From NCBI GenBank assembly GCA_001643675.2, contig LSRY02000049.1, positions 124,001 to 188,000 of the forward strand: a DNA stretch of 64,000 nt, given 5' to 3'. How positions within the stretch are numbered: position 1 is the stretch's first letter; every line of letters starts with the position of its first letter. A program made the translations under genes and the position numbers. Origin of the DNA: Monocercomonoides exilis PA203. Lineage: Eukaryota > Protista > Preaxostyla. Positions 1 to 31,007 of the stretch are shown here, piece after piece. The notes beneath the pieces were generated by a model. The model saw only the letters and a program-made list of their open reading frames with translations, made no database searches and was not told the origin of the DNA.

Positions 1-10
1 TTTTTGGATA

Positions 11-2050
11 GGGTGATTTTTTTATCCGGACATAATTTTTATTTTTAGATAAAAAATAAATATTTTTTTATAAATCGCATGTTGAAATTTTCGAAAAAAT
101 GCAACAATCAATAGTAAATATAATCCATCAATTCTCTTTTAATAATTTTTCTGGTATTTCTTCGTTCATTATCATCTTCGAAATCATCATCTTTTAAAAT
201 TTGGGATTTCGATAGTTTTCTTTTTTTCGGCTTCTCTTCAGAAAACAAATCTTTTTCAATTTTTTCTTCAGCAGAATCATCAATTTTCTTTTCCTCTTTC
301 ATCTTTTTGTATGCTTTCCATTCATCTAAAAATGCTTGGTCGGATATATTTTTTCCATGGAAATTGAAACGATGGGATTTTTTTTTCAGCTGAACAGAAG
401 GAGTGTCAGGTAACTTCATCAATACGGAATTGGACTGCCCAGACAACACGCCGCTCTTTTCAAATGCAGAGTGAATTGTTGAAGGAAGCAATGCAGTTTT
501 CAAAGCCTGTGGCAAGGCATTTGCAACTGCTTTTCGTCTGAGTGCGATCGAAGAAGATGATGGAACAACATAGTTTGAATTGAAACATCTTTTAAACACA
601 GCAAAAACTCCGCAGTCAAGTGGCTGTGTGAGATGAGTACTGTGTGGAATAAATGTAACAACGTCAATTGATTCATCTGCAAATTTTTGCCATAGATCTG
701 GCTGTGCTCTTGAAGGATGAGAATCCAAGAGAAGCAAGCATCTTTTTTCGTTCATTTCCAGCAATTTTCTTCTTTGGACAATTCCAGGTAGTAGTATCTC
801 TTCAGCATAGCGAGCAAACAATGCATCTGTCATCCATCCATCATTATCTGCCCATGCGTGAAGCTGCGGGCTGAGCAAGACCTTCATTTCTTGTGGAAGT
901 TTTTTAGATGGCCAAAGAACAAGGCTTGGCAAAGAATAACCATCAGCAGCAACTGCAACCACAAGAGTTGAGTTTGGCATGTTGATTGGTGTCTTGGAAA
1001 ACCCGACTGGAACATCTGAAGGATGAACGGCTAGTTGTTTTGTGGTGTCGGAAAGGCGCAAAGAGGATTCGTCGGTGTTGAAGATGAGAGAAGGAGAGTA
1101 TTTGTGAGAATCATGAAGTGATTGCAGAAGAGAGAAGAAAGGTTGAAGAGACTGTTTGTTTGATACCGATAATCGTTGAATATCAACGTTATGAGGAATG
1201 GATGTCTTTAGGTCTGGATTTCGTTTAACGAATGAATACGGAGTTGATTTTGAAATTTTAACTTCTTGATCTTCTTCTTCTCCACTTCGAATTTTTCTAT
1301 CAGTTAGCACTGATTCCATCTTTAATTATTATAAACAGTAAATATTTATTTGAAATAAATAAAAATGCAAACCAATCTTTTTGTTTGAGTTAAAGAATAA
1401 CTCACTCCTGTCATGCTTTCAATTCTGATAACTCCGGTTATCACTTCTTTGTCTTCTTTCGTGAACAGCTCTGGCCGACCAACTTTTCCCACGGTTCTTC
1501 CCTTTTCAACGGCAGTTACAGCTCGGTTTATCGATGAACGAGAGAATTCATTCAGATTAGCAGCGTCGGTAACACGGCATTTTCCGTCAGCAATTATTGT
1601 GGCAATACGTACTAATCGATTTTTAATTTGACGATACTCGAAAGATTTCATCAAATCTCTTAATTTCGTTAGTCCAATTTCTTTTCTTTGTTTCACTGCG
1701 CTCATACAAATAAAGTAATGGTTATGATCTTTTTTTATTTTTAGAAAAAAATTTTTTTTGAAATGAAAAAAAACCAAAAAAATTTATTGGATTAAATTCT
1801 AACTTAGTAATACCCCTTGCTATGACCTAATCTCCTCAGGGGAGGCACAAATCAGAGATGGAGGAGCTAACCCCCCCATCTCCCCCCCCCCCCCATCAGA
1901 GATTAGGTATAGTAATTTAATCTTAATTTCGAACTGTTGACTTTTCCTTATATATTAAAAATATGATAAAATATCCAAAAAGTGGGAAGAAATAATTCAT
2001 AATTAAAATTTTTGTCCGGATAAAAAAATGTCCGGATAAAAAAACCACCC
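11..2050 (-). mobile_element. pogo/Fot-like (Tc1/mariner superfamily, DD35D) DNA transposon, apparently intact, 2040 bp
   Basis: 23-bp TIRs GGGTG(A/G)TTTTTTTATCCGGACAT at 11-33 and 2028-2050 (1 mismatch); TA at 9-10 and 2051-2052 as TSD; internal transposase; subterminal TGTCCGGATAAAAAAA direct repeat at 2013-2044. Confidence 0.95.
108..1705 (-). CDS. pogo-family transposase (HTH + DDE_1), 2 exons (1705-1373, 1319-108), ~514 aa
   Basis: HTH-like AANLNEFSRSSINR and GRP motif; catalytic FNTDES, LLLDSH and QPLD with 35 aa between D2 and D3; phase-0 GTTTG..AAG intron 1320-1372 joins the two ORFs in frame. Confidence 0.92.
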
Positions 2051-2316
2051 TAGTTATTTATTTATTTAAAATGTGAATGATTTATTTTTTAATATTGTTA
2101 TAAATAAGTTTCAAAACTTTATTTTGGATTAACTTCTCAATAATATTTGTAATTTCAATCATAATTGTGAATGTTTCATTTCAATGGTTTTTATAGTTTT
2201 GTGAAATTTATAAATTATTATCTTTGTAATATTCAATTGTTTGCTTGCGGATAATATTTATCAATCTTATATTTGCCCAATGAATTAGTGAAACGTGATT
2301 TTTTGTCTTCAAAGAA

Positions 2317-2674
2317 GGCATAAGTGTAAAAAAATACCTCCTTCAGTTTTATGATTTTTTTCATTTCAACAAATTTGAAATAAATAACATAAAAAAGCAA
2401 CACTTTTGGGTGGAGCAGTTTTTTGATTCTTTGACTAAAATTTCTTCAAAAAATTTTTGTGATCAATCCCATAACTGAATTTTCATAATCATCTTTTTAA
2501 CTTTTAATGTTTATTTGCGATAATTGAGAATCAATCTTAACATCAAGTGAAACTGTTTATTTAAAGAAACAAGTTGAGTGTGTAATTTATCATTATTTAT
2601 TTTATTTTTATCTGTTATTCTTTTGATATTTAACTTTCACTAATTTATCAATAACAATTCATAATATTTCGTTG
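2317..2674 (+). repeat. Left 358-bp terminal inverted repeat
   Basis: Reverse complement of 5663-6020; no mismatch noticed by eye. Confidence 0.93.
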
Positions 2675-3145
2675 TAATTAATTTTTCTCAATGATAACAT
2701 TTATAATAGAATTTTCTATTATTCCAATGCATTCAAATTGTCATTCATCATAAAGAATTCTTTAATTTTTGATTTTTTTTTGAATTGAAATGTTTTCCAT
2801 TTGAAATGAAAGCTATCGTTCTTGTTTTTTTTTATTGATTTTGTTTCATGAGACATAATTGTAAGATAACGATTATTGTTCATTTTGCTTTTGTCGAATT
2901 GTCTCAAATAATAAAAATTGTGAATGAAAATCCAAAAAAGTGTGCAATACTAACGTGATCTGTTTTTTGTGTGTTCGTTTCATAAAAAATGAAAAGAACA
3001 AAAAACTTCAAAAGGAATAAATACAAACGGTACATATTTTTCCATTGTTAACCAAGCTGCTCGAAATACACTTGAAATGCTCTAACAATCCCTATGCGTA
3101 CCCAATTCCACAACATAAAAAATTCTATGGATAAAAAGTCAAATT

Positions 3146-4450
3146 TTGAATCGGCTCAATAGAAGTTCTCATTTTTTCCTTTTAAAATTACCTATGATTT
3201 CTGAGTTATACATGAACTTAAAGAAGATGAAGATGAAGTGGAAAAAGAAAAAGAAAAAGAAAAAGAAACAGAAGGAGAAGGAGAAGAAAAGGAAGAGGAA
3301 GAAGAAGAAGGAGCAATTGGAGCAGCAGAAGAGGAAGAGGAAGAGATGGAAAACGTATCAACTTCTGTTTTTTCAGAGAGCTGTGATTGAACTGGGAGAT
3401 TTGCATTGGCAAGCATCGAGTCAAAAGACAAGGGAGTTTGCGTGGGTGCTGCTTTGACAGAAAAAACAGGACGAGAAGAAGGAAGCTTAGAAAAGGGAAT
3501 GGAAGCATTATGAACTGAAGAAGAAGAAGAAGATGATGATGATGATGGCGATATTGTTGTTGAAGGACACATCAAAGAACCCATAAAGCGCGAGAAAAAT
3601 TCCTGACGCGGTAGATGCACAGGTGTTGCAGTTGAAGTTACAGCTGTTGGCTTCCCAGTCGATTCTGTATACGCTTCAGAGCAATAAAGAATCTGCATTT
3701 AATTCTGTTTCCTATGCCTCACATCCTCATCATCCTCCACCCCTTCTTCCTTCTTCTTCTTCTTCTTCTTCTATTTATTCTTCTTTATATTCTTCTTTTT
3801 CTTCTCTTTCTCTTTCTCTTTCTCCTTCTCCCCATCACCTCCTGCGCGTGTCGCATCATCTTCATCGCCTGACTTGTCTGATTGACAGCTGTTATGAATG
3901 TGAATAAAACAATCACAAAAACAAGGGCAAGAACAAGAGCAATGTGGAGAACAACAAAAAGGGAGGTGGAAGATCTGAAGGGGTTGTTGTGGGTTTGGTG
4001 GTGAGTGGATGGAAGGAGAGAAGAATTCACTATTGAAGTAGAAGTGTAAGAGGAGGAGGAGGAAGAATAAAAAGAAGAAGAAATTGTGGTGGTCTTGACA
4101 AACAAACGTCCAATAAAGAAGAATTTTGTTGTTGAATGACATGATTATTTCGAACACAAATGTTCTCGGGTTTAATCCTCCGCTTTTCACACATTTGAAT
4201 AAGCTCATCTGTTTTTTTTTTTCGTTGTTTCTTCTTTCTTTGTTATTTCTCTCAAAGCACTCTCCTTCTTCTTCACATTCATAAACCTTGTTAATAAGAC
4301 TTGCAGTTTCAACAAGTTGTATCTTTTCATCTTGTGGAAGTTTCAATCGAGTTCTGTGCAGGTCTTGAAACAGACACCTTCCTGTTCCAATCCATCAGTC
4401 AAATTGGATGGCTGATGAAGAGCATCAAATACATCAAGCTCGATGTGTCT
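3146..4450 (-). pseudogene. Decayed Ser-rich / TM plus basic-tail host-gene fragments (cargo)
   Basis: Short broken ORFs (3192-3698, 3785-4105) with poly-Ser, a hydrophobic stretch FVVLHIALVLALVFVIVLFTFI and poly-K/R; interrupted by stops. Confidence 0.45.
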
Positions 4451-4899
4451 GGTTGACATCTAAGATAAAAAAGAAGATGAATGAAAAGAAGATGATTAGT
4501 AGGAGGATGATATTGAAGATGAGAAATGGGAAAAGATAATTTTGTCTGTTAAATAAAAGCCAGATAATGCGATATGCTGAGTGTGTTGATAAGAGGAAAG
4601 ATGATCAATTTGAAAGAAGCGAACGAATAATCAGATTCAATATGAGGTGAAAAAGCATATTGATCGCATGAGAATGCGTTGATGTGTTGCTTCGCTTAGA
4701 TGATGAAAACCATGCAATGAGTATCGAGAAAAGAACAGGAAAAAGTTGTGGAGAATTGAAAAAAAATGATTCAGCAAATGAATTCAAATAATGTGTATTA
4801 GATGAAGATACAAAAAATAAAGTTGATACACAGCATACAGTGATTTTCGTGACAGCTTTTCTGAACGGAAGTGTTTGAGAATGAACAAATATTTGGGTG

Positions 4900-5573
4900 A
4901 GTAGGATGAGGGAGGCATCTTGTGTATCTGTCATGAGAAAAGAACAAATTCTATTATTTCACATGGACCAAGTTGTGTTGTTCCGCAGAGATCGGTGTTT
5001 GTCCCATTATTTGACACGATTTTGAATGTTGTAATGAGAGGGAGCCAGTCATTGAGCACATCGCAACCAGCTTGTCCATTATTCCACACTCTTTTTGATG
5101 GGGTTGTTGAACCACAATTTTCAAATGGAGATTGAATGATGCTGCTGCCATTGAAGAACACATCATTTCCTCTTCCATTGGTTGCAGTATTACCATCAAA
5201 GAAACAAAATGTGATGAATTTTACTCCATTCATCCAAGAATAAGAAGAAAGAAAAAAATGGCTGCACCTCCAAAAGATGCGGAAGCAGTCAGTTTGTTAT
5301 TGATGAACTTGCATTCATTGATTGAAAACTGAATTAACTTTGCAGAGGAAAGATTTTGAAATGAAAAACCAGAAGAATCACACAAATATTAAAAAAGTAT
5401 TAACTTTTTGTTAACATAAACTGTCAGTTTGACAGAAAACTGCAGATTCCAAAATGCCATCCAGTTCCACACTAATCAATAATTTTTCAACTTTCCACTT
5501 TGTTTTCTAAGAATATCCAAACAGAATTTGACTGTGGATAACCAAAACAAATAGCTTTTCCATATAAATATGA
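4900..5573 (-). pseudogene. Fragment of beta-helix/pectin-lyase-like surface protein family (cargo)
   Basis: ECKFINN..GGAAIF..FCFFDGNTATNGRGNDVFF and CG....PC motifs typical of right-handed beta-helix surface proteins; signal-peptide-like start near 5573 followed by stops. Confidence 0.55.
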
Positions 5574-5662
5574 GTAACTTGCGAAATTAGATTTTCGGAT
5601 ATCTGCATCTCACGAATTATTTACAATAAATAGATTTGCATTTGGTAAATAAAAACTTATTT

Positions 5663-6020
5663 CAACGAAATATTATGAATTGTTATTGATAAATTAGTGA
5701 AAGTTAAATATCAAAAGAATAACAGATAAAAATAAAATAAATAATGATAAATTACACACTCAACTTGTTTCTTTAAATAAACAGTTTCACTTGATGTTAA
5801 GATTGATTCTCAATTATCGCAAATAAACATTAAAAGTTAAAAAGATGATTATGAAAATTCAGTTATGGGATTGATCACAAAAATTTTTTGAAGAAATTTT
5901 AGTCAAAGAATCAAAAAACTGCTCCACCCAAAAGTGTTGCTTTTTTATGTTATTTATTTCAAATTTGTTGAAATGAAAAAAATCATAAAACTGAAGGAGG
6001 TATTTTTTTACACTTATGCC
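5663..6020 (-). repeat. Right 358-bp terminal inverted repeat
   Basis: Reverse complement of 2317-2674. Confidence 0.93.
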
Positions 6021-6895
6021 TCAAAGAAATCTTTTTTTCCTCAATATATGTTAAAGCATAATTGCCATTGCTTATAAGTGATTAATAAGTTGCAGTTTTT
6101 TCAATAATGCACACAATCATATTACAGTTTCTGTTCATTTTTGTTCATTACACTTGTTTTAGCAAACTCTTTTCAATTTCATTTTTGATTCATTTTTCAC
6201 TTTTTCAACAAAAATAGAACGTTGTAGCCACTAGGGATAAAAATAAATAATATAGTTATTTTTATTGAATTTTCATATTTTGCTGATCATGAAAAAATCC
6301 AACGGAAACATGTTGAACAAGTATTTAAGTGATTAAGAGAATTTTCATGAGTCGAATGATAAACTGTAACATTGTTTCAATGTCAATATATTGCATACAC
6401 TGGTACTGTGTTTTTTAAAAAATTTAGAGTCATTCTTTGGCGTTTTATCATTACAACAAATCTTAAAATAATTTATAACATTTTAATTTTTTGTTTGAAT
6501 AAGAAAATAATCGTAAAGTTAAAAATAGAAAAAACTTTTTGCAAAGTCCAATAATAAATAAATAACAGACTAATTATTGTTTTGAACGTAAATTATTTTA
6601 AATAACAGCTTGATTGAAAAAAAATTCAAATCATATAAAAAGAATTATTCTATCTGAATAAAACATATTGAAATAAGAGAACAAAAAATGCAAAATGTCA
6701 ATTCATTTGACATTAAAGTTTTCGAGGAGAATTCCTAAATTATTTATTCAACAATTACAGTTCAATTTATCCCTGGTGAAAAACACTGAGAAAGAAAAAG
6801 AGTTGAGAAAAATCAATCAAATATGTCACAAATAAAACATTGAAAATATAAGATTAAAACTTTTTAAGCATTATAAATTTTGTGAAATCAAAATA

Positions 6896-7322
6896 CAGTG
6901 AAGTTCGGTTATAATCACATTCGATTTTGCACGATTTTTTGTGATTATAACCGAACTTGATTATAACCGAAACTGTTTTTTCATTGAAAATTTTAACAGA
7001 AATAATTTTTTATAATGAAAAAAAAGTATTTTCAATATTTATTGAAATCCACACATTTGTTTCAATTTTTCAATTTTCAATGATTCAATGTTCTTTATTG
7101 TTAATAATAAAGCAAAAAATAACAACTTTCATTTTTTCAAAAATTTCAAAATAGACAGAAAAATACCCATTATTTTTTAAAAATTGTGATTATTCGCGAT
7201 TTTGGTGTGATTATAACCGATGAAATTTCACTGGAAAAATGCTATATATTTTGATGCGAGAAAAAAATGTGATTATTCGCGGTCTTGATTACAACCGAGG
7301 TGATTATAACCGAGCTTCACTG
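6896..7322. mobile_element. Tigger/pogo-type MITE, 427 bp
   Basis: 23-bp TIRs CAGTGAAG(T/C)TCGGTTATAATCAC; TA at 6894-6895 and 7323-7324; several internal TGATTATAACCGA copies; no ORF. Confidence 0.9.
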
Positions 7323-7857
7323 TAATTCACAATATAATAAATAAATTTAACTCAAACATAAAAGAACAAATAAGCGACATTTCCAACGAATATTAATAAA
7401 TAGAGCAATTTCTCATAAAAAAGCATAAGAAATAACTATTACAAACACCTTTCAAGGAAGATGCAGAACCTTCTATTTGTTTTTCACATATAAAAGGGTT
7501 AGATCAGAAAATGAAAATGGAAAATACAATTTTGAATATTTCGAATCATTAAAAATTATATGAATCTTTGAACTTTGATTAAAAAGCAAGCACTCAGATA
7601 TTTTTTTGATTTGTTATTTTATCCTTTTTTCCTTTAAAATCGAAAATGTTCATTTCCGAACTAGTTTCAAAAAACCAAATTTTCAGAAGTTATAAAAAAT
7701 GGAGTAAAATATAATACTCAAACAAACTTGTTTTTCGCATTTTCGAGGTTGGTAAACTTCTCTGAAAAGCAAAAATATATTTTTTCTAAAAATTCAACTG
7801 CTCACTTGGATCGGGTTTTGCACTTGGATCGGGTAAAGCACTCACTGTAGTGGGAAA

Positions 7858-7881
7858 AATAATAATAATAATAACAATAAC

Positions 7882-7974
<93 letters not shown>
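7858..7974 (+). repeat. (AAT)n microsatellite
   Basis: ~39 AAT units with two AAC interruptions. Confidence 0.95.
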
Positions 7975-8751
7975 CATTATAAAACAGTTTCCTTGATATT
8001 TTGTTTCATTCAATTTGGAACACATTAAATAGAAATTTGTCAATCAATTTGTTATTTTCCATTTTCCAACAGTGCAGTACTGTTCTCATTTAAATTTTTC
8101 GAATAAATAAAGATTCAAGGAAATATTTATCAGTGTCATGATTTTTGTTCCAATTGAATTGATTTTTTAAGTTGTTAAACAAAGGAAGATTTGAAATTCA
8201 TATTATCATTTTCATCTATCTTTGATATGTATCTATTGACTGATGAGCAGAAATCAACAGTTTCATCCTGAATATACTCGGTGAACAGGATACACTTTTC
8301 TTGTATCAAATGTGGGGGAAAATACGGACTTTCAAGCTTTTTTTGCACAATGCATGAAAAAATTGTTTCACTTATAACATTATTAAATTTAATCAGATTT
8401 CAAAATAAATTTGATTTTCATATCCGTAACCAGGCATAGTTGAAATCAAAACATAAAGTTTTTCAATATTTCACGAATGTGAAAAAATGAATCCATTTTT
8501 ATTGTGTTTTTTGAAATAAGATAGTCAATGAAAAGTTCATAATTCTTCAATGAAAATGCCTGGAGTCAAATATTTTGTCCCATGTGGATAATTTTTATCG
8601 TTTTTTTACAAGTTCCTTTTATTTCATTTTCAAATTATTTATTGTGCAAAAAATACAAAATATCGAAAAAAATACCGGGAAAGACGTTTTCTTAATAACT
8701 GCCAGAGAAAATATACTGATAATATTTTTTTTATTAACCTTGTCTCAACTG

Positions 8752-8914
8752 ACTCGTTTGATATGATAGTCTTTCATTTCCGCTTTATTTGTTCATGGAA
8801 TATAATTATAAAAATCAAGAAGAAATGCGAAAACTTTTTTCTCTGAGAATTATATAATAATTATATTTCATAAACAAATAAGGCGAAAATGAAAGTCTTT
8901 CATGTCAAATGAGT
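8752..8914. repeat. Imperfect inverted repeat (~58-bp arms, ~47-bp spacer)
   Basis: 8752-8809 reverse complement matches 8857-8914 with about 8 mismatches. Confidence 0.7.
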
Positions 8915-9103
8915 AAAGGAAGATAAATGTGATTGTTTTTGAAATCATATTTTTTTGTGGGTATGGATAATTTTCTTATTCGCAGTTTCTCAAAAAAGTG
9001 TTTTTTAAAAAGCGTAATATGCTTTCCAATTTTTGTCTTTCAATTACATGTTATCACAGAAAAACAGAGAAAAGTGGATTTATGGTTTAAACAATAACAT
9101 TTA

Positions 9104-11302
9104 TAGTCTGGGACAAAACTCGGGATAAGGACACCACCCGGGACACTTCAGTCTAGAATAATTTTTTTGAATGTTTATTTAAAACAATTCAAAATTAAAA
9201 AACAGTTCTTGATTAATTTTCTTGATTTTATCTTTTGAATGCCTGTCAAAAAATATGTCTCTTCAATAAGAAATTATATCAAATTGAATGATCAAACTTC
9301 CATAAATCATATGAAAAAAACAAACGTTTCTTCGCCTCTCCCTTTCAACAAATAATTACCGATTTAGGCCTCAGCAGAGTTTCGCAGGATACCTTCCAAA
9401 GCGGAAAAAGTTGATTATCTTCTGAAACAAGATGGAATTAAACCTTCAGATCTTGTGAAAGAAAAAATTATTACTCATTCTTCCATTTACCGGCATATGG
9501 CTTCAAAAAAAGCAGGGCCTGATCCTTAACATGCTGGCAGACCAGGGCTATGCAATAAAGAAGAAATCGAGGAAATAGAAGATTGTGAAATTGCTGAAAT
9601 ATCATCCACAAACAAATTGACAGTTTCAGACATTATCAGATTCGCGTGTTGCTTTATGTTTGTTTTATTTTTTATTTTGCATTTTTGATAGTCAGAAAAT
9701 GTGATGATGAAGAAAAAGAAGGAATGCACACCAATGCCTGAAGCCAGAAAAATCAGCAAAAAATGGGAACGCAGGTTGATAAAGAAAAGTGGATTACCGA
9801 AATTAATAAAACCAACTTTTATAGATCTTCATCCCCTTCAAGCGTCGATAATTGAAAATATGAGGAATAGGTTTTCGTTGTTGAAAAATGTGATTGATGA
9901 TAATAATATTTCATCAGATTTAATCATCAATATGGACGAAACTGTCATCTTGATGAAGCAGTCGAACAAGGAAATAGTAGTCACAAAAGAATCTCAACAT
10001 TCTTTTTTATCAGAAGCACAGAGAAGGAAAAATGCTTCATTATTTTTTTCGATTTATGCAGATGGGACGTCACTTGATCCAATCATGCTATGTCCTTCTC
10101 AGACCATTTCCGAGGATCTAAAGTAATTGAAGTATCATCAAATTAACTGTTTGGCAAATGGGACAGGCTGGATGACAAGAAGAGATTTTGAAAAGGTTAT
10201 GATAGAAATATTATTGCCAAAAATTAATGAGAAAAGAGTTGAGCTTCATGGACAGTCTTCCTTCTCATTGATTGTTCTTGATGGGCATTCCTCTCGCCTA
10301 AGTTTTCCAGTGATATCTTGGTGCAGAGATCATTTTATCCATTTATTGATTCTTCCATCACATTCAACATATCTTGCTCAGCCTCTGGATAGGTTTGTAT
10401 TCGTGTATTTCAAAAACAGTCTGAAAAGAGCATTCTCGGTTCCTTCTGATTCGTCAATTTCTTCTTACAGAAAATTATTAATACCAGCAGTATCAGAAGC
10501 GGTTAATAATTCTCTCTCTCCAAGAATTGTGAAAAAGTCATTTGAAGCATGCGGAATTTTCCCATTTGACCCTTCTGTCGTATATCAGTGCCTTCCGCAG
10601 AACATTGAAACCTCTTCGACAGCAAAAAAAGTTGTAAACAATTCTTCACTTTCAAGTAGTATCAGCATGAAATTGATAACAGGAGATAATTTTTTCGAAA
10701 GCTTTTCTATACAATTAGATAAAAAAAAGAAAAGTCACCCAAACAGCTCAGTTTCATCGCAAGATATTGCAATTTCTGAGGTGAAGAAATCATCTCATGT
10801 TAAGGTCAAAAGCTCCAATGAAACAGGACCTGTTGAAAATGTCAACTTTCAAAATCACGGAAGGAAAACAATTATTCACGATGATGTTTCTTCGAAACAA
10901 TCTGATAATTCAGAGGATAGAAATGAGCAACAAGATACAACAGAAGAAGAGATTCTTTTCCCCAGTGAAAAATGGAAAAGAAAACTAACTTCAAAAAGCA
11001 AATGGGGATCCATCTTCCATTTCAGTTAAAAATATTTAATGTGAGTTTCAAATTATTTATTCTTTGCTTATTAAAACATGATTCGACGTTATTCAACAGT
11101 GCTTTGTTTTCAATTGCTTTTTAAGCGCCAATCTTTTTTAACTGATTTTTTAATTGCAAATTCAATTCAGATATTTTCATTTGGCTTGTTCGATCTCCCA
11201 AAATACACGAATAGCTCGAAAGTCGTTTAATTTTTCCATAGAAAAGTGTTGAATTTTGTCATAAAAAGCTAAATGGAATATCCAGGGTTTTGTCCCTGAC
11301 TA
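9104..11302 (+). mobile_element. Second pogo-like DD35D transposon, defective, ~2.2 kb
   Basis: TIRs TAGTC(T/A)GGGACAAAAC(T/C)C(G/T)GGATA (24 bp, 3 mismatches) flanked by TA at 9102-9103 and 11303-11304; ends ambiguous by 2 bp. Confidence 0.88.
9311..11029 (+). pseudogene. pogo transposase pseudogene (exons 9311-9643, 9692-11029) with 4 premature TAA/TAG stops
   Basis: GRP, INMDET, VLDGH and QPLD (DD35D); stops at 9353, 9365, 9527 and 10124; no frameshift; GC..AG intron 9644-9691. Confidence 0.88.
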
Positions 11303-11304
11303 TA

Positions 11305-11817
11305 TTGATAGGAAGAGCGAAGAAGAGGAAGGATAAAAAGAAACGAAAGAAGAGGTTCTTTTGACGAGATGACAAGCAACGTTGAGTTCTTATTTTTTTA
11401 ACCGCCAATTGTGCAATGAAGAATTCACAGGGCTTTTTGGCAGTATCATTCAGGTGTTTCTTGCGGCAAAGGATGATCACAGCGATTTTTGCAAAAAAAG
11501 CATTTGCCTATTTCGAGAAGCAGCTGAAAGCAAAGGAGCGAAAATTGAAGAGTTATTGAAAGGAGGAGCTGTTGATGCTATCTTGGATGAGATACAGCGG
11601 ACAACATTGAATGGGGAATTGGCATCTGAACGCTTGAGATTTTTTCATTCGATTTTGTGGTGATTGAAAGGAAAAGAGAAAGACGAAATGGAAGAAGCGA
11701 AAAAAAAGCACTGAAAATGAAAGTACTTGAAAAGATGGAAGAAGAAGGATTAGAAGATTTCATCATAAACTTTCATGAAAGAATTAAATTTCTGAGATGG
11801 CGATATTCCTATGAATA
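11305..11817 (+). pseudogene. C-terminal fragment of a helical multicopy lineage-specific protein family
   Basis: IEELLKGGAVDAILDEI..EEAKKKALKMKVLEKMEEEGLED read through an internal TGA; no start; abuts the transposon. Confidence 0.5.
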
Positions 11818-11867
11818 AGCAATTGATAAAAATTCGTATATGATCAGATATATTATATACCGACGTG

Positions 11868-11973
11868 AAACTGTGTGAATTTTCATTATTTTATATTAAA
11901 TATTTGTTAAGATATTTGAATTAAAAAGTTTTGTCCAGATAAAAAAATATCTGGACAAAAAAAAAACACATTA
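11868..11973 (+). mobile_element. Solo terminal remnant related to the right end of the pogo element at 11-2050
   Basis: TTTTGTCCAGATAAAAAAATATCTGGACAAAAAAAAAACAC aligns with TTTTGTCCGGATAAAAAAATGTCCGGATAAAAAAACCACCC. Confidence 0.6.
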
Positions 11974-12637
11974 TTATTTACGAAACAAGTCTTTATTTTT
12001 TTTTCAACTCTATATTTTGCAAAATACACATTGTTGTAGTGAAATATCTTTCGATACAAAGATTATTTATGAACTTTTACGCTAATAAGATAATAATACT
12101 GTGTCAAATTAAACCAGCCCAGTTCTCAGTGAATATGCAGAAGAATGTCATGAAATTATTAATTTTTTACTTTTTACCGTGAATAACAAAAATAATAAGT
12201 AATCTAATCTGTTTATTTCACTTATAAATTTAATATTAAAATTCATCGAAAAAATTTATTTGTAATAAAAAAGAATTAATTACAAAAGGTTGGAAATAAT
12301 GAGTTAATAACATAAATGAGTATAAAATTCATACAAAATATAATTTGCTAAATTTTTAAAAAAAGAAAACAAATAACAACGAAATTTACGTGTTGAAAAC
12401 TCGCAACTTTCAAAAGTTAATCGTTGCAATCAATCAAGTTCGAAAATACACAAAACATATTCACCTTCACTATACCAAAACTTCAAAAAAATGAATGACT
12501 TTGAAGTTATTATTGTTTGTCAAATTTCAAATAAATTGCTACCTCCTTGCTTCAGAATTTCGTTGAATTGAAAAATGTAAAATGCTCTTTAACTCTTCAT
12601 AATTGTAAAAAACACAATTTTTTAAAAAGTCTGAATA

Positions 12638-20040: not shown

Positions 20041-23000
20041 ATGGGAAACTCCACATCCACAGATCAACAAAGTGAAGAACAAGAATCGCCGATAAATATA
20101 CTAGCTAATAGACTTCATTCACCTTGGCTTGGCGTTATACGAGTAAGAATAAAGGAGCTTAATGTTCCCAGAATTTGTGGGCGTCATTTTTCCGCAACAA
20201 TAAGGTATATTGACTTTTTAATAAAACAGTTTGTCTATAAAATTCATTTTACAGATTCGGAACACAATTATTTACAATTCAAGCAATACCAACCGAAATT
20301 GTGAAACAGACATTCAAACAACAAACTCGCCTCCCTAAGGTATTTTCACAAGTTGAAACCATTTCTAAAGGATCAAACATTTTTCCGAGCATGGCATTTA
20401 CTCCGCCCTCTCTTCTTTTTTGTGGTGGTGATTTCCCTCACACAAAAGCTACATCAGGTGTTGCATCTTTTACTGCTTCTGCAGCTTCAACAGAAGTGAT
20501 AGTTTCATCCCAAACTGCAAATAATCATATACAAGGATCTGATGAATGCTTTCTTTGGATTCGTTCTGTCTCTTTAAAACTCAGAATTGCAGTATCAATT
20601 TTTCAAAAACGACCAATGCCTCAGCAGGAATTACAAAAGCAACATCAACAAAAGCAAAAACAAGCATATCAGAATAACTCTAATAAAAATACTGATATTG
20701 TTCCAACTAATAAACCAAAAGGTGAAAAAAAAACGAAAAAAGATGGATATTTGGGAACTTGGTCCATCAGCATCGAGGAAGCTCTTCGGGAACACTTTAT
20801 TGCAAACAACGAAACATTGCACTTCGATGACATTTCTGGAGAAGAAGGCAAAAACGCCGCAGAAATATTCTATCAAACATTCACAGAAAAATCAGAAAAA
20901 ACCGTAAATATGATCAAATCGTTACCATCTTTTTCATTTACAACGCAAGGATTTCTTCACGAAAATCCTCTTATTCAAGATACGGATATCTTTTTACACA
21001 AATATCATCAGATTTTGGCTTCAGACGCGTTTATTCCTCCACGTGTGGTAGGAAATGGCGGGCTTTCTGCACAAAAGAGCAGCCAAGCACAAGCAATACC
21101 ATCACCCGAAACCGTAGCTTCCTCCTCCTCATCCTCCTCTCCAGAAGCGCTGATGCATGCACATCCAATAGCAGGACTGCCTTTAATCAATTCATCCTCA
21201 TCGTCTTCTTCTGCTTCCGCTTCTGGTAGTCAGACTCAAGTTTTCTCACCTCCCCTGCCAAGAGTTGTCAATCCTCCAAGCACAACATCATCTTCTACCT
21301 CATCTCAGCCACTTTCTCCATTCACTCTGCCATCATTCGAAGCTCTAAGCACATCAGTCGTAGCTCCGAAGTCTCCAACACACTCTTCTTCTTTATCAAC
21401 ATTACCTCTTTCCTCCTCCTCTTCCTCCTCTTCCATCTCTTCTTCTTCCATCTCTTCCTCTTCTCCCCAGCTGCCTTCACTTGCTCCATCAGCTTCCCAA
21501 TCTCTCATTCATCACAATTCCTCCAACAGCTCCGATGGAACAAGCATTCAAGGTACCAATGACTGTTCACTTTCATTGCCTTCTTCCTCAGTCCCGTTCT
21601 CACCGCCTCGCTCTCAGCTTAACTTGACTGAATTCATCTCACAAGCTGCAATACAGGACACCACAACGATGCTTACTCATTCAGAGACACAGTCTGCTTC
21701 AACTGCAAAGACAGCATCTGCAACGCTATCACCATCACATTCAACAGAAGCCTTACTTGTTTCATCTCCCTCAAAAACCCCTGTTCTTTCATCTTCATCT
21801 GGATCTGCTGCAAACGAGTCGATCTCTCAGCCATCAACCCTTCCATCCTCTTCCTCCCCTTCTTTATCTTCCTCGTCCTCTTCCTCTTCCACTCCTTCTC
21901 TTCCATTGTCCATCCAATCTCCCTTTGTCACACCCGCCTCGCTCGCTGCCCCATCCACAGAACGCTTCAAAGCGACGTTCATTCCGTCGATGAAGGAGGT
22001 GCTCCGCCTGCGGCATCGCGACTTCTTCTACTCTCTCCTCTGCGGCGAGGTGACACTCGAGTTCCACTTCCAGACAACCACCGCCTTCCTCACGGAGCTC
22101 TACGAAAGGCTCCTTCGGTACTTCGACCTCGACAAAGATGGGTGTCTGAACCCGTTTGAGTTCGCAGTGCTTCTGGCAGCAGTGTCTGCAGAGCCTGTGG
22201 AGACAGCAGCCGAGCGAGCTGCGAAGCGAGAATGGGACGAGCTGTGTGAAAAGCGGAGGAGGAAAGAAGAAGAAGAGATGAAGGCAGCACAACTGGAAAG
22301 AGACGGGTTCTTTGCTCAGTCTGAGTTCTTCTCAGACATCGAAAGAGAGTTTCGAAAGCTGCCGCTCTTCTTTATGGACATCTTCAAGAAGCTGAATCTG
22401 CACAACTCGCCAGACAGGCAGATGCAGCAGATGTCTTCAAATGAACCACCAAATGCAACAACATTTTCTCCAGTCAAAAGCGCAATGCCACTCTCTCCTC
22501 AAAGCGACAGTCCAACATCACAGAACTTTCCTCTTCCTTCCACCTCAACTGCAACGATCCCTTCATCCTTCTTCCCACCTCTCTTCCTTCAGGCGCACCC
22601 TGACCCCTCCACCCTCACGTGCCCCATTTCCTCTCTTTTGGCTGTGCTGCTCCACCAGCCCTGCCGCTCCATCCTCCGCACCACCCCCATCACAGGCGTC
22701 GACCTCTGCCACTCAGCCGCCTTTGCCGACGACTCCGCTGTCCTCTCCACAGTCATGCACGAGCTGATGAATGCGCCCCAGCTGCATCCAGACCCGCTGT
22801 TTGAGATCCAGGCGTTCATGGGCAACTGCATGAGCGCCTGGCACAACGGCGTAGATGACTGCCTCAACAACCCGACGAATGCGCTTCTGCCGTTTGGGGC
22901 AGGAAAGATCAAAGACGCTGTGATGCACGAGGAGCTGCAGATGCCCAGAGTGAAGGAGAAGGAGAGGACGCGTGTGAGGAAGCAAAGAAGACAGCTGATG

Positions 23001-26000
23001 AAGCAGCGGAGGAGGGAGATGCTGGAGATGATGCAGCGAGAGAGCGAGCAGCTGCAGAGCGAACAAGAAGCAGATGAGTCAACAACATTGGGGAAAGGGA
23101 AGAAGAAAGGGAAGAAAGGGAGCAGGAGATACACCACTGAAGTGGCGAATGCGCTGCGGCAGGAGGCAGCAAGGAAGTTCCTGCAGATGGTGAAGGACGA
23201 CCTCGAAGCAGACGGGACGTGGGACTGTGCGGCGGTGGATGTGGACACGATGGTAGCACTGGGCGATGAGCAGAGCACGAGTTCGAGTGAGGAGCAGTCA
23301 GAGGAGGATGAGTGGGTGGAACATATTGTACCGCTGACGTGGGTGAAGGAAAACAAAGTGGCCAGAAAGAAAGCAGAGAAGAGATGCAGACAGGGAGAGA
23401 ATCTGTTCTCCACAGCGTCGTCGAGCATATCCTATCCAAAGAGAAACATCAGCCACTCACCTGGAAACAGAGGCTCATCTTATCCATCCTCTCCTTCGAG
23501 GCTGTCGCTGTGCAATTCAGAACTGAATGAAGGGAAACAGATGAAGGAGGAAGACACAATTGCATCTGTGCAATCACCCAGCTTCATTCTTCCTTCTTCT
23601 TTTTCACCCAGACCAGGAAACATCAGCCCCATGTCACCAAGACCCCGCACCAATTCTCCATTCTCTTCGGCTTCTATTACAAGCACTGGAAAGCACACAC
23701 CATCCATCCCCATAGCATCCATGCTCCATGCCCCGCTGTCTATCGCCCTCACATTCTCTCTCTCACAGGCAGCTCAGCAGAACCTCATCGCAACTTTGAT
23801 TCGGCTGAGGCAGGAGAAAGAGCAGAGCGATCTTTTGGCAACGGCAGCAGATCTGCCTCAGCAGAAGACACCACTTGCCATTGCCCCAACAACACCCATT
23901 TTGAGCCCTGCTCCCCCACAATGCATTCAGAACAGCCAAAACACACAAAACACACAAAACATTCAAGGAACACAAAACAGCGCAGCTGCTGTTCACTTAG
24001 CATCTTCCTCTCAAACACAGGCTGTGTTCCAAGGGTCAGGCTTTGCTATTGCACGGCTGGATGACCCAGCAGTTGCAAAGGCATCTTCACCTGCCATTCC
24101 GCCAGCCACACCAACACAAACAACATCTGTTCAATCATCTGCATCATCATCATCATCATCTACAACTTCTTCTTCTTCATTATCCAATTCTCCTCAACAG
24201 AACTTGCCAACCACACCTGTACCTTTCTCCACTACAATTACTACCAGTGACGGCTCTGTAACACCTGATGCAGCACAACAGCGCTATTCAGTTAGTTCTT
24301 CACAGAGGAGCATCCAATCTCCTGCACCTTCGCCTTCATTGTCTGCTGCTCTGCCACAGCCAAAAAAAGCAGCAAAATTAGAAATGCAGCAAATTCAGCA
24401 CATTTCGCGTGCATCGCAGCTTTTCTTCCACCCTCTTTACTCACCTTCTCACGTCACCTCTTTCGCTTCTTTGTTTTCGACGTCTCCGCCAAACAGCTCC
24501 AAAACATATGCCATTTCGCCTGCTCTTCCACCCCCACACCCACAAAACAGCGATACAGCAACGATCAACCCTGCTCCACAGACGAAGACTGGCCCATTGA
24601 AGCGTCTGAAGAAGTTTCTTGGCTTTTCAAAGAATGCCCAGCAATCACAGCTTTCTCAGCCTTCTCAATTTTCTCAGACTTCTCAGCCATCACAGCTCCA
24701 AAAGCAGCACTTTGGCCGGAAAGAAGCAGAAGTGCCGTATTATTTGAGTGGCGAGTATGGTTATTCATCTGCCATGGAGAGTGGAGGAAATGCTGCAGCA
24801 TCACCCACACCGTCCCCTTTGTATCTGCACACACCAGACATCAGCCAATTCCCTCAGATATCATCTTCTGGCTCTGCTTCATCTGATTTCTCTTCTCTTT
24901 CCTCTGTTTATGCCTCTGTTTCTGCCTCTAATACATCTACACCCACACCCACACCTGCCCCTACCTGTCGCCATGACTCAATGTATTCTCCTTCTCTCTC
25001 TGTTGATGCTGAGCGCAGACAGTCAGTTTCTCCTTCTGCACAAATTCCTCATTCGCCTTCAGGTTTTAATCGACAATTGTCTTCTTCTTCAATTTCTGGC
25101 AATCAACCTGCAATGTTTCCTTCATCTCCTTCTTCAGCATCATCTGCCGCACAATTCACAAATGCAGGAAACGAATCCTCATTCCTTTCTCCTTCTCCTT
25201 CTTCTGCTTCTGCTTCTTCTTCTTCTTCTTCTTCTTCTTCTTCTTCTTCTTCTTCTTCTAATTCATCTGTTCTTACGTCCCCAAGTCAAAATTACTATCT
25301 CAACACAAACTATGGCTCTCTCTATTCTCTTTTAGATGCATTGGCTGAGCTGCCTCCCTCTGCATTCCATCAGCTCTTCTTTGCACCTGAGGCAAGTCAG
25401 CCAGACACTCACACACAAACAGAGAACTATTCAACAGCATCATCATCATCATCATCATCACCTTCTTCCTCTGCTTCTGCCTCTTCTTCTTCTTCTTCCT
25501 CTTCTTCTGCTTCAAATTCACTTCCATCTTCTGCTTCATCAACAGGCAGTTCTCTTTCTCCTGTGCCATCTCTCACCCAGCCGATGGAAGTGCAGTCATC
25601 ACATCTGTTTCCAGACGGATCTCAAACAACACCCCAATCATCTTGCTCATCTGCTCCTTATCAACTGCCTCCATCCAACTCTTCTTCTTCTATTTCTTCT
25701 TCTTCTTCCTCTTTATCATCTACTTCTTCTTCCTCTTCTCTTCCTCCATCAACATCTCCTCTTCCTTTGCCCCGTCCTCCTTCTACCGATCAGCGCTTCT
25801 CTCCTCGTCTCTCTCTGAATCCACCTACAGTCTCACCCACAACCACACCTCCTCCTCTTCCCCTTCCTCTTCCTTCTCCCTCTGCCTCTATCCCTGGCTC
25901 TCCTTCTCCTTCTCCTACTCCTTCAGACTCTTCTTTGTCTCCTTCTCTGCGCACCCACCGCCTCCAGAGCAAAACTAAACGACCAACTCTTTCTCGACTG

Positions 26001-29000
26001 CGCCAGGTGTTCTCCCGCAGCGACTCGCTCTACATCGACGACGATGATGAAACAGATGGCTTGTTTGAGTACACAGGGAATGATGGATACCAGCAGAGCT
26101 ACGACGATGGCGAGGCAGACGATGAAGAAGAGACAGACACAGACATCGCTGATGACTTCTCAGAGGATTATCTCTTCCTCCCTTCGAGATACCCACAGGC
26201 CTCGCCATCTGCTGCAAGTGCAGCTTCTTTCTCTTCTGTTGCTTCTCCATCACTCGTCCGCCCTACTGCTGTCTATCCACACAACGCTTCTTCTTCATCT
26301 TCCTCCTCTTCATCTTCCTCTTCTGCTGCTTCTTCTGCTGCCTCTGCCTCATCAAAACCACAAAAGCGGGACTTCGAAAGGCTTCTGAGGGTGCTGTATC
26401 CACACAGATGGGACGGGGTGACGAGTGTGGAGTCGGTGAAGGCGCAGCGGCGGATGCGGCGTGTGGAGTACAACCGGATGAACGAGCTGCTGGATGGCAG
26501 ATGTCTGCGCATTGTGGACAGAGAGAGTGGGCTGATCACAAAGGAGCATCTGCCGGCAATGCTGGTGGCTGCGTTTAAGGCTGGCTACTGCACTTCCTGG
26601 GGCCGCCGCATCGCCCGCTCGTCGCTGATGAAGCAGTGGTTCGTGATCATCACGAAGGACATGGGGAAGAGGAAGAAGAACCCGACGTCGGTGAATGAGA
26701 TCCTGCCATTCATCAGAGAACACTCAGTGGATGTGACAGAGATTGAGAAGCCGATTGAGTCGTATACGAATTTTGACGACTTCTTCAGCCGCAAGCTGAA
26801 GCCAGGTGTGCGGCCGATTGCATCGCCAGAGGATGACTCTGTGCTTGTGTCGCCTGGAGACAGCAGAATTATGGTGTTCCAGTCGATCAACGACGCCACC
26901 GCAGTGTGGGTGAAAGGAAGGAACTTCGGGCTGGTCACCCTCCTCTACGGCATTCCTGAGCTCTTAAACATCTTTGTTGTCGAGCCGAAGGACAAGAAAG
27001 GAGAAAAATCGATGAAAAGAAAGATGAGAAGAGAAAAACCGTACCATGGTGGAAGAAAGGCGCCTGCATCGCCTGCCAATCAACAGCCAAAGAGATTCTT
27101 TTTGCCAACAATTCTCCACAAGCGCACATCAGAACAGCAGACAACTGCTGAATCTTCACAGAAACTGAATGAAAAGCCTGAAAAGGCAGCAGATGTCTCA
27201 ACAGGATGTGTGAAGAGTGCTGCTTCGTCCTCTCAGCTGCAGTCGCCTTTGTCGGCGGATTCATCTCAAACAACACTCGGCGAAGGAGCTGAGAATGGAA
27301 GCATGAAGCAAGCAGCAAAAACTGCAAAGGGGGCAAAAGAAACAAAAGTTACAAAAGGAGATAAACAAGAAGCAGGAAGAAATGGATTGAATGGAGATGC
27401 AGATGGCGATTTATCTTCTTCTTCGTCTTCGTCTTCATCAACAACAACAACCGACGATGATGCGAATGGAAGAGGCTGGCTGACAATTGGTCAAATTGAG
27501 CAGAAGAAGAACTTGCTGAACAAAGAAATGATGAAAGATGAGAAGATCCAGAGGAAAAGAACGATGAAAGAAGAGCAGAGGAAAAGAAAAGCGGAGTCAA
27601 TGAGACTGAAATCGGAGCAGAAAAGAGCGAAGGAAGAAAGGAAGAAGAAGGAGAATGCCGAAAAGGACAGGGCAAAGGAGAGGGCGAAGCACTTGGCAGC
27701 CACAAAGAAGCAGGAGAAGAATGTGGAGAAGCTTATTCGACAGGCAGAGAGAATGAGAGCGAAACAAATAGAGGCAGAGCAGAAGCAGAGGATGAAGACG
27801 CAGAAGGAGAAGCAAGGGGAGCAGAACAACAAAGCAGCAACAATATCATCCACAACATCACCGTCTGTACCTGTTGTTTCGCCTGTTTTGTCTCCACCTC
27901 TCTCAGCGTCATCAACAGAAGCTACTCCCACACCACTCTCAGACAATGCGCACTCATCTTCTTCTTCTCTCCCTGCTTCTTCGCCTTCCTCTGTCTCTTC
28001 TGCTAACACCCGCTCCACGTCCTCCCTCCGCCCACTCGCTTTGTCTCCCTCACGAGCTGACGGTGCAACACCAATTCAACAGAAAGATGCAAGCGCCGAT
28101 GCTCGTCTGCAATGCAAAGCGCCTCTTCAGCCAATTCCTCGCTCCACTTTGGCTGACATCTTCACCGCTGCCACGCACGACAGACCGCCAAATGTGCCAC
28201 TTGTGTCTGTTGAAGGGCAGCCGTTCTATTTGCTGACTGTATCTCACAGCTCTTCCTCTGCATTCACTTCTCCTTCTCCTTCTCCTTCTTCTGCTTCTGC
28301 TTCTTCTCCTCAATCAGTTGTGCTCCCACAGGTTCCCTTTGATGTGTTTGATCGTCTTCAGCCTTACTTCATCTGCTCCAAATGTCGCAACCAGCATCAT
28401 CTCCTTCAGATACCGCAACAACCACATCAAACTCAGACTTCTGTGGAAAGAACACCCATTGCATCTGATTCGAGTGACACTGGAAACAACAGCCATCACA
28501 AAAGTGGCAATAGCTTCAGCAATGCTGTTAATAATAGCAATAACAATAATCATCTTAACACTCACAACAGCAGCAACCACAACAGCGATGCCAACCTTCC
28601 CCGTGTCCTTTCAACAACCCCTGCTGAAGATTCCCCCGAGGCCTCTCATCAACATTCCTATGCACAATCGCCACGTGCACCTTCTTCCGACTCTTCTCCT
28701 TCGCCTGCTCGTCCTTCTGGAGACAAGTCATCTCCATCTGTGACGCCCCGCATTGACCCGCGGCATCACTGGCTCCATTCGCCGTGCTCAGAAAACTCGT
28801 CGCAGGCAGACACAGACACAGATGCTGTGGACTCTGATTCACTTCTGTCGATGCAGAAAGACCTGGCAAGTGCAATTGAGATGTCCCCGCCTCATCATCC
28901 ATCGGTGCTGTCGACACAGATTGATCAACAGCAGACAGCTCAGCAGTTCGCGTCATTTGCATCATCATCATCATCATCATCATCTTCTTCTTCTTCTTCT

Positions 29001-31007
29001 TCTTCGAATTTTGTGCCACTCTCCCCAGCAACACCTTCAACAGCCATACCATCTCTCTCTCCAATGCCAGCTGCCTCGCCAAGTGCTAATCCCAATCAGC
29101 ACATTGATCCAGTGAGAATTGACAATCTGAATTCTCAGTCATTCTTCTGCTTGTTGTGCAATTCTTACATTCTGTCACCATCATCCACCAGCAAGCCAGG
29201 AATCACTGCTCGTTTGAAGAACTTTATTATGCCGCCTTCATCTCAATCACATCAGCAGAGCAATTCCATCACAGGACAAGTATCCTCAGGTCATGCTGGT
29301 GTTATTGTCGCCCTGCCAAACGAGCAGACACCAGAAACACAACCGTTTACGAGTGAATTTCCAAAAGAGCTCAATTTTTCATTCAATTCACTGCAAGTGC
29401 AAGCACAAGCACAAGTATCTGTTGTTTCTCCCTCTGACGGGCAGCTGCCCCGCTCTCAAAAGACGCCAAACTGCATCTCGTCTGCCCTGTTTCCTGAAGC
29501 ACAGGCCGAAGCTTTTGCGGAGCCTCTTGTGAGAGAAGCAAGCATGCCTGCAGGCGCAACGACTCCAGACTCGACTGCTGCATCATCTGATTTTCAGATC
29601 AAAACAGCTGATGCAGAAAGCGAAGGAAGAAAAGTTGACAAGTGCGGTGTGTTGGTGGAGGATCGTTCTGATCCAGTTTTGACACATAGCTCACATGAGA
29701 GTTCAGTTGAGTCAATGGTGCGAGTGTTTGCTGAGGCTGCCAAGGAAGATGAGGAAATCCCAACGCCATTTGAACCGTTTGCTGCGTCGTTGGAGATGCA
29801 GAAGTGTCTGAAGGAAGCAGAAAAGAGCGGCATGGTTATTCCTTCTCCAGATGAAACACCCGAATCACATGCTTCACTGCCATCGGTGGCAGACGGAAGA
29901 GGAGGAGACGAGGAAGAGCAGATGCAGCAGCAGACAGATGGGCAGGCAGAGCGTGGAGAAGAACTCACAGGCGATCCATACACTGAAAGCGACCTGTCAG
30001 GCGACGAAGAATTTGAGGACGAGCAGTTTGGCGAGCGGAATGTGATGGATGAGCTGAATGCGGTGGAGAAAGCAGAGCTGAAAGAGATTGAGGAGGAAGT
30101 GAAGAGCCAGCTGCGCGACGAGGAAAGAGCAATGGCCTCGTCGCCGTCGCTGTCTTCGTTCCCGTCCCATCTGCTGGAAAGCAGCTGCTCCCACGCTGAC
30201 GATGAGAGGAGCCAAAGGCCTTCCATTCTGATGGCTGCACTGACAACACCCGCTGAACAGCAGCAGCAACAACAGCAACAGCAACACAAACAGCAAAAAC
30301 AACAACAAATTCAACAGCAGCAGAGTCCTTCCACAAAGCCATCGTTTGAGCCAGAATGCACAACGGACAATGCTGCCATGCAGAGTTCAGTGAGACAGCA
30401 GTCATTGCAGGCTTCATCCTCTGCATCTTCAGCATCGTCTGATGAAAGGTCACCTGACCATTCATCCATCACTTCTTCTTTGCCTCAGAATCCGAAAGTG
30501 TTCTCATCTGCCTCGTCTTCTCTTACTCCCCCGTCTCATTCATTCAGCTCGTCTTTGCCGCTGCGTGCATCCATTGTGATATCCCGTCTGGCGCCGCAGG
30601 ACTACCACCGTGTGCACACGCCCTGTCGCTGCAAGGTCGTCTCGATGCACCACGTGAAAGGGACGTACTACACAGTCAACCCAATCGCTGTCAGGCAAGA
30701 CATCGACGTGTTCACAGACAACACCCGTCTGCTGTTCCATCTGTCTTCTCCTTTCTTCGGCTCGTTCGTGCTGGTGATGGTTGGGGCGTGCTATGTCGGG
30801 AGCTGTGTGTCGTCGGTGGTTGTTGGGCAGGAGCTGAACAAAGGCGATGAAATTGGGTATTTCCTACACGGAGGCTCATCTGTGCTCTTGCTGTTTCCTC
30901 GCCATGTCCCGTCTTTTGATGCTGATTTGCGGACGAATTCTATCAAGAAGATTGAAACGTTCGTCAGAATGGGAACAAAGATTGGGACAGTTAAGTCATC
31001 TCATTAA
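20041..31007 (+). CDS. PSD2: Giant type II phosphatidylserine decarboxylase proenzyme (C2-like, EF-hand, PSD), ~3638 aa, intron 20205-20254
   Basis: YTNFDDFFSRKLKPGVRPIA, SPGDSR, VKGRNF, RLAPQDYHRVHTP, YYTVNPIAV, VGACYVGS, KGDEIGYFLHGGSS, ETFVRMG; EF-hand DLDKDGCLNPFE; MGNSTS start. Confidence 0.9.

Follow-up and report, generated by a model that had tools for sequence, protein, structure and literature searches.

A Merlin transposon very probably carrying host-gene fragments in the oxymonad Monocercomonoides exilis

A 64,000-nucleotide stretch of the genome of the oxymonad protist Monocercomonoides exilis PA203 (contig LSRY02000049.1, positions 124,001 to 188,000 of the forward strand; hereafter, the window) contains an element of 3,704 bp, including both of its arms, at positions 2317-6020 (C46:126317-130020). 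This element is very probably a non-autonomous, cut-and-paste transposon of the Merlin superfamily that carries fragments of host genes. In the literature, the name Pack-TYPE is given to class II elements that are non-autonomous and enclose pieces of coding genes within their terminal inverted repeats (TIRs) (PMC8903248), and the window element qualifies as one, being non-autonomous and holding host-gene fragments whose donors lie elsewhere in the genome. A Pack-type transposon had been proposed at this site in an earlier note made from the letters of the window, and that reading is supported by the donor loci, by the lack of a transposase, and by transposition of the whole mosaic as a unit.

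The element and its Merlin family

A search for inverted repeats identified two arms of 371 nt (2316-2686 and 5651-6021) that are 99% complementary and 2,964 nt apart, by far the largest such pair in the region. Base-by-base comparison of the arms found 358 nt without a mismatch (2317-2674 versus 5663-6020), precisely the length of identical TIR that the earlier note had given, with mismatches starting only after this run, at arm positions 359, 363, 365, and 371. A perfect inverted repeat of 358 nt is far beyond chance. The left TIR lies at 2317-2686 (plus strand), where the perfect run can be extended to 370 nt with three mismatches, and the right TIR lies at 5651-6020 (minus strand); GGCATAAGTG is the start of both. 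Exact copies of the octamer TCAAAGAA adjoin the left arm (2309-2316) and the right arm (6021-6028), and the 8-bp target-site duplication (TSD) claimed previously is thereby confirmed. A tblastn search with the family transposase found no match in the window element, nor does any open reading frame (ORF) there have a transposase domain, in agreement with the reported absence of the enzyme. Inspection of the interior ORFs showed them to be short and interrupted by many stops. The three kinds of interior piece described in the note, namely beta-helix, transmembrane (TM) plus poly-K, and serine-rich, are all present; they lie on the minus strand and are interrupted by stops.

Far from being restricted to the window, the arm sequence was found at 41 places in the same genome, which include at least 17 arm pairs. 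The termini of all 17 pairs are GGCATAAGTG or a one-base variant of it, and a GG start was read at 33 of the 34 ends (GGCATAAGTG; GGTATAAGTG in L034), the exception being the right end of L039, which starts with TG. Perfect 8-bp TSDs flank 13 of the 17 pairs, and all 13 are different. Two copies, on C8 and C69, possess the whole structure of the window element, with arms 96-97% identical and interiors 86-88% identical to its own. Each of the three copies of this mosaic has its own TSD (TCAAAGAA in the window, AATCATAT on C8, and CATAAGAA on C69), demonstrating that the mosaic has been transposed as a unit to separate sites. Copy number in the window subfamily is low, with three copies that lack a transposase and five that bear one.

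TSD-flanked TIR pairs with differing interiors, which the note had suggested looking for, also exist in this genome. For example, L036 and L037 constitute a sister subfamily that shares these termini and has TSDs of its own, without a transposase and without the beta-helix piece, and with approximately 0.9 kb of cargo that matches part of another host gene, at a single locus (C18:462331-463241; 80%) inside an open frame of 8,739 amino acids (aa). A repeat of approximately 255 bp at window positions 43937-44191 recurs inside L037 (3513-3766) and occurs more than 10 times across the genome, at 74-83%. In another example, 642 bp of L039 match one locus only, on C1, and L039 also contains a nested 2.5-kb TIR element (1895-4430) with 192-nt arms. 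This nested element is repeated many times across the genome, its best match being 96% (C18:106638-109172).

Five relatives of 6.5-10 kb, on C38, C48, C27, C63, and C25, share the same termini, and all of them encode a DDE_Tnp_IS1595 transposase; the autonomous partner that the earlier note had called for has thus been found. A 426-aa ORF in the C38 copy (L042) matches PF12762 DDE_Tnp_IS1595 with an E-value of 1.5e-17 and 64.5 bits, relative to a cut-off of 27 (Pfam), and the ORF is longer in some copies. Across the five copies the transposase is 95-100% identical in amino acid sequence, is free of stops in four, and has a ratio of non-synonymous to synonymous substitution rates (dN/dS) of approximately 0.35. 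The C38 copy lies between the 388-nt, perfectly complementary arms (414-801 and 8373-8760) of a different inverted-repeat element, and may be a nested insertion in it.

Merlin superfamily DNA transposons were reportedly set out by Feschotte in 2004, and their published definition comprises a DDE domain of the IS1595 type, 5′-GG termini, and TSDs of 8 bp (8 or 9 bp) (PMC8101967). All three features occur here, with the IS1595-type transposase in the autonomous relatives, and together they place the window element family in Merlin, not in Mutator/MULE or hAT. The earlier note had left the choice between MULE and Merlin open; the Merlin half of that choice holds, since DDE_Tnp_IS1595 is encoded between the same termini, and the MULE half does not.

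Two other explanations bear on what the element is. Membership in Mutator/MULE or hAT might be argued from textbook knowledge, as MULEs have long TIRs that begin with G and hAT elements typically have an 8-bp TSD. This assignment has virtually no chance of being correct, because no transposase other than DDE_Tnp_IS1595 was found between these termini, and because the 8-bp TSD and 5′-GG ends match the Merlin definition (PMC8101967). Specifically, a Mutator/MULE element would have a MuDR-type transposase and a TSD of 9-11 bp, while for hAT the TSD length fits and the transposase does not. The other explanation, that the inverted arms were created during assembly from palindromic nanopore reads, draws on the nanopore basis of the assembly (PMC8767320) and on four other loci of the family that are large palindromes with inverted flanks. 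These four are the pairs without a direct TSD: L033 (C91:1061826-1066338), L034 (C91:1518982-1523493), L045 (C58:1152476-1160826), and L047 (C48:313733-318999). Their flanks are inverted and duplicated at 99.5-99.9% over at least 1.3-3 kb, a distance bounded by the sequence fetched. Such loci are either nanopore read artefacts or large palindromes centred on an element, and they were left out of the insertion count. The window element, by contrast, has a direct 8-bp duplication and flanks that are not inverted, and 12 further copies with the same termini have their own duplications at unrelated sites. With 13 independent insertions, each with its own 8-bp TSD, an assembly artefact is ruled out for the arms, and its probability for the window element is negligible. 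The unique centre of the C58 palindrome (L045 4512-4907, plus strand) contains a decayed DUF5906/VapE-like fragment of the D5 primase-helicase type, which suggests a virus- or Polinton-like remnant.

Arm length distinguishes the two kinds of Merlin copy, as the arms are 182 nt long (97-98% identical) in transposase-bearing copies versus 319-612 nt in non-autonomous ones. The note had taken the apparently identical arms as a sign of recent mobilization. That reading is not supported, because arm identity gives no date: nearly all of the non-autonomous copies measured have arms that are 99-100% identical (96% in L038), even where interiors are 12-14% apart. High arm identity instead points to copying from arm to arm or to selection on the ends. 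The intact TSD of the window element would fit a young insertion without proving one. The further suggestion that the foldback could yield double-stranded RNA directed against the donor genes also fails, since only the arms are self-complementary and they hold no donor sequence.

Origin of the interior

The interior had been described as scrambled, and this description has to be revised. Positions 1-3247 of the window element align in one piece, at approximately 79% identity, to positions 1-3307 of L041, which bears a transposase, and the same holds for L042 and L043; the pieces are ordered, with the same order and strand as in these relatives. Past position 3247, the window element has 87 unique bases followed by the right arm, whereas the relatives continue with tandem repeats and then the transposase gene. 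As judged from these alignments, the window element is a deletion-type derivative of a lineage that was already carrying the cargo. The presence of the same cargo in transposase-bearing copies places the capture before loss of the transposase, which differs from the history in which a non-autonomous element itself makes the capture, as in plant Pack elements; the published definition does not demand that history.

From left to right, all on the minus strand, the interior begins with a subterminal backbone segment of unassigned origin (2687-3235) that is common to the transposase-bearing copies and to two old relatives, L056 and L058. This is followed by a Ser-rich captured fragment of 531 bp (3236-3766), a captured fragment of 255 bp with a TM helix and a K/E-rich part (3832-4086), a further backbone segment (4087-4837) that comprises a part named ‘mid143’ and the first 82 aa of the TM/K piece and occurs only in the element family and old relatives, and a decayed beta-helix-like fragment of 766 bp (4838-5603).

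Donors were mapped with L042 as the reference, and three of its segments have matches outside of the element family. In genome-wide searches, the Ser-rich and TM/K-rich segments each returned a single non-element locus and seven to eight element copies, the rest being short noise from simple repeats. The donor of the Ser-rich piece lies at C14:564099-564899 (79.6% nucleotide identity in a 573-column alignment), at the end of a 918-aa open frame with no Pfam domain. The donor of the TM/K piece, at C13:1186599-1187149 (86.7% nucleotide identity), is a single-copy transmembrane kinase gene with a 2,171-aa open frame and a Pkinase domain. The captured part of this gene (aa 731-833) contains its only predicted TM helix, located between the N-terminal part and the kinase domain. 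Both pieces are read in the donor’s own frame in the elements. The third segment corresponds to a beta-helix-like, N-terminal domain found at more than 1,200 places in the genome, many of them in frames of approximately 3,000 aa, and the window fragment shares 68-71% nucleotide identity with the members compared from this giant tyrosine-kinase family. In the one member checked, L049, a tyrosine/serine-threonine kinase domain closes the frame. A language-model look-up, which is a lead only, placed the beta-helix-like domain beside DUF1565, Chlam_PMP, and Beta_helix clusters, and this placement would fit a beta-helix surface protein. Separate donor loci for the interior therefore exist on C14, on C13, and in the beta-helix/tyrosine-kinase family. 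No Merlin TIR was found near the host loci that were fetched, and the cargo ORFs matched Pfam only with low-complexity noise.

The kinase family is among the largest in M. exilis and overlaps the ‘unclassified repeats’ of the genome (PMC8767320). Between 1.5 and 2.5 Mb on C25, short members of 400-780 aa are clustered, often in inverted pairs of identical copies separated by a few kb (e.g., 1547349/1553729, 2500833/2505501, and 2050377/2065640).

Two further ideas about the interior were rejected. The giant ORFs of the window (20301-31007 and 32969-40780) are not donors, as they have no match to the cargo. A ciliate-like genetic code, considered for the in-frame TAA, TAG, and TGA codons of the E-rich interior, is contradicted by the transposase and by host ORFs of 2600-3600 aa that are open in the standard code; the in-frame stops of the window interior represent decay.

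The old relatives L056 (C17) and L058 (C9), which are approximately 70% identical, provide a clue to the order of capture. Both have the backbone and the beta-helix piece and lack the 844-bp block formed by the C14 and C13 pieces, and L058 carries a (GAT)n tract exactly where this block sits in the others. All of the junctions, between backbone and C14 piece, between C14 and C13 pieces, and between C13 piece and backbone, lie in purine-rich GAA/GAG/GAT triplet repeats, in elements and donors alike. The relatives without the block show a stepwise gain of the pieces, and from them we infer the direction, from host to element.

Template switching during repair is the mechanism that has been proposed for plant Pack elements. 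By a comparable route, the pieces may have entered the Merlin lineage through repair synthesis or template switching at the GAA/GAG/GAT simple repeats, giving a one-strand chain of C14 gene piece, C13 kinase TM piece, and beta-helix-like piece set in the backbone. The window element inherited this interior from an ancestor that it shares with the transposase-bearing relatives. Abortive gap repair, with copying from arm to arm, could then have removed the transposase part and extended the 182-nt arms to 358 nt; in the window subfamily, the right end has presumably received a copy of inner left-end sequence. Insertion at TCAAAGAA duplicated those 8 bp, and the cargo of the window copy is now probably non-functional.

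Capture from the host must be weighed against a simpler history, in which the element is a plain deletion derivative, the interior was always the element’s own accessory gene, and the host loci received their pieces by conversion or exonization. The same interior is indeed present in all five transposase-bearing copies, several copies have an open frame of 379-437 aa, and the backbone part ‘mid143’ is confined to elements. Yet the older relatives lack the C13/C14 block, the C13 piece is the only TM helix of its kinase gene, and the beta-helix piece comes from a host family with more than 1,200 places and frames of approximately 3000 aa, with no TIRs nearby. In addition, dN/dS is approximately 1 or higher in the backbone and Ser-rich parts. 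Altogether, an origin as an accessory gene is highly improbable. A related suggestion retains the host origin and treats the chimeric frame as a working membrane protein, built of host parts and aiding element or host, of which the window copy would be a dead version. In the C25, C27, C63, and C8 copies, a single open frame of 379-437 aa does run through the C14- and C13-derived pieces with the donor frames kept, while in the window copy it is split into pieces of 117-207 aa, and dN/dS is 0.2-0.6 over the TM/K and beta-helix pieces. These values come from substitution counts that are very small, too small to decide on selection, and the low figure for the beta-helix piece reflects how far the host paralogs that supplied it have diverged from one another. 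The adjoining backbone and Ser-rich parts look neutral, the frames vary between copies, and a Pfam domain match is absent. A working protein is thus improbable.

Several observations weigh against the interpretation as a Merlin element with captured host-gene fragments. The C14 donor lacks a recognizable domain and has an in-frame stop in its frame; no individual donor was located for the beta-helix piece or for the backbone at 4087-4837; and donor identities are only 68-87%, so that the captures are old and their direction is given by parsimony. The window subfamily is also approximately 20% diverged from the extant transposase-bearing copies, so that mobilization in trans by them is putative. 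The first terminal bases of the window element agree with those of the relatives at 17-18 of 20 positions, and the element would be movable only if the relatives’ transposase recognizes its ends. Finally, an empty site was not found: the 264 bp adjoining the insertion are unique, and only window positions 1850-2052 of the left flank are repeated, so there is no paralogous empty site.

Apparent exchange with the host beta-helix family

The beta-helix piece of these Merlin elements appears to have a more dynamic history than the remainder of the interior. L041 and L042 are 96-99% identical over most of their left 3.7 kb, and the chief departure from this is a beta-helix block of approximately 800 bp (L042 element positions ~2485-3280; L041 3485-4290), where identity is 72-75%. 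The patch in L041 is nearest to host paralogs (81-83%), versus 76% for sister elements. A recent donor of the patch was considered and rejected, as the best host match is only 81-83%; either the assembly lacks the source or the source went unscored. A tree was built from 16 copies borne by elements and 6 from the host, a small number of host rows that tempers the result; in this tree, the element copies do not form one group, and forcing their monophyly costs 49 log-likelihood units (approximately unbiased test, p = 0.0012). We call this a piece that has apparently been replaced repeatedly from the host family, with the donor of the patch not in the genome at high identity.

It is tempting, albeit doubtful, to regard the Merlin elements as a standing system that shuffles the largest gene family of the host. 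Were this the case, the elements would repeatedly pick up pieces of large genes, among them the giant receptor-like tyrosine kinases, and join them in frame at simple repeats, the beta-helix piece would keep swapping with host paralogs, and the products would be spread. In that event, transposons would have driven some of the 29 Mb of ‘unclassified repeats’ overlapping kinase genes.

Related systems and surroundings

Capture and reshuffling of gene fragments by cut-and-paste transposons are known mainly from plants, and a few isolated cases have come from fungi and nematodes. In plant Pack-TYPE elements, such as Pack-MULE and Pack-CACTA (PMC8903248, PMC6379663), TIRs and a TSD likewise enclose fragments of several unlinked host genes, these fragments are joined on a single strand, in some cases within one reading frame, and sister elements carry different cargo. 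The window element differs in its oxymonad host, its membership in the Merlin superfamily, and its low copy number. It differs also in that transposase-bearing copies hold the cargo as well, and in that one fragment derives from, and is still exchanged with, a host family of more than 1000 members. Outside of plants, Turmoil-1 of Caenorhabditis elegans is a TIR DNA transposon into which two protein-coding fragments have been transduplicated (PMC2572040); its captured sequences lie in the inverted repeats, whereas those of the window element lie between the arms.

Merlin elements themselves are already known from M. exilis. More than 100 copies in at least seven families have been described in Monocercomonoides sp. 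PA203, with 8-bp TSDs and TIRs mostly of 23-29 bp (PMC8101967), in a paper that does not use the terms ‘non-autonomous’, ‘captured’, or ‘host gene’. The published elements resemble the present family in their DDE_Tnp_IS1595 transposase, 5′-GG termini, 8-bp TSDs that show no clear target consensus, coexistence of several families, and internal tandem repeats, and differ in TIR length, which is 182 bp or 319-612 bp here. Literature searches for Pack-Merlin, for gene capture or transduplication by Merlin, and for transduplication in protists returned no report, Turmoil-1 being the nearest non-plant case found. Gene capture by Merlin is thus new as far as these searches reached.

The window element provides a clean, donor-resolved case of capture by a Merlin transposon, and does so in a metamonad protist. 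It also offers a way to approach the question of why repeats that overlap the kinase family make up nearly half of the M. exilis genome, in that fragments of the family are carried by, and exchanged with, mobile elements. The practical value is modest but real: such elements will confuse gene prediction and repeat annotation in the reference genome of an ‘amitochondriate’ eukaryote.

The remainder of the window contains other mobile and giant sequences. Frames for Pogo-like DDE_1 transposases are found at 108-1319 (minus strand) and 10127-11029 (plus strand). The repeated part of the left flank (1850-2052) is the end of another transposon or repeat, present in at least 40 copies at 80-97% identity, and stops 264 bp before the Merlin insertion. 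Targeting of the insertion to a tRNA gene was rejected, there being none within window positions 1-12000. Farther along, a block of approximately 20 kb with 42-54% GC, in a window of approximately 30% GC, possesses two giant, intron-free frames, one of 3,568 aa with a phosphatidylserine-decarboxylase domain at its end (20301-31007) and one of 2,603 aa with Nup98-96 domains (32969-40780).

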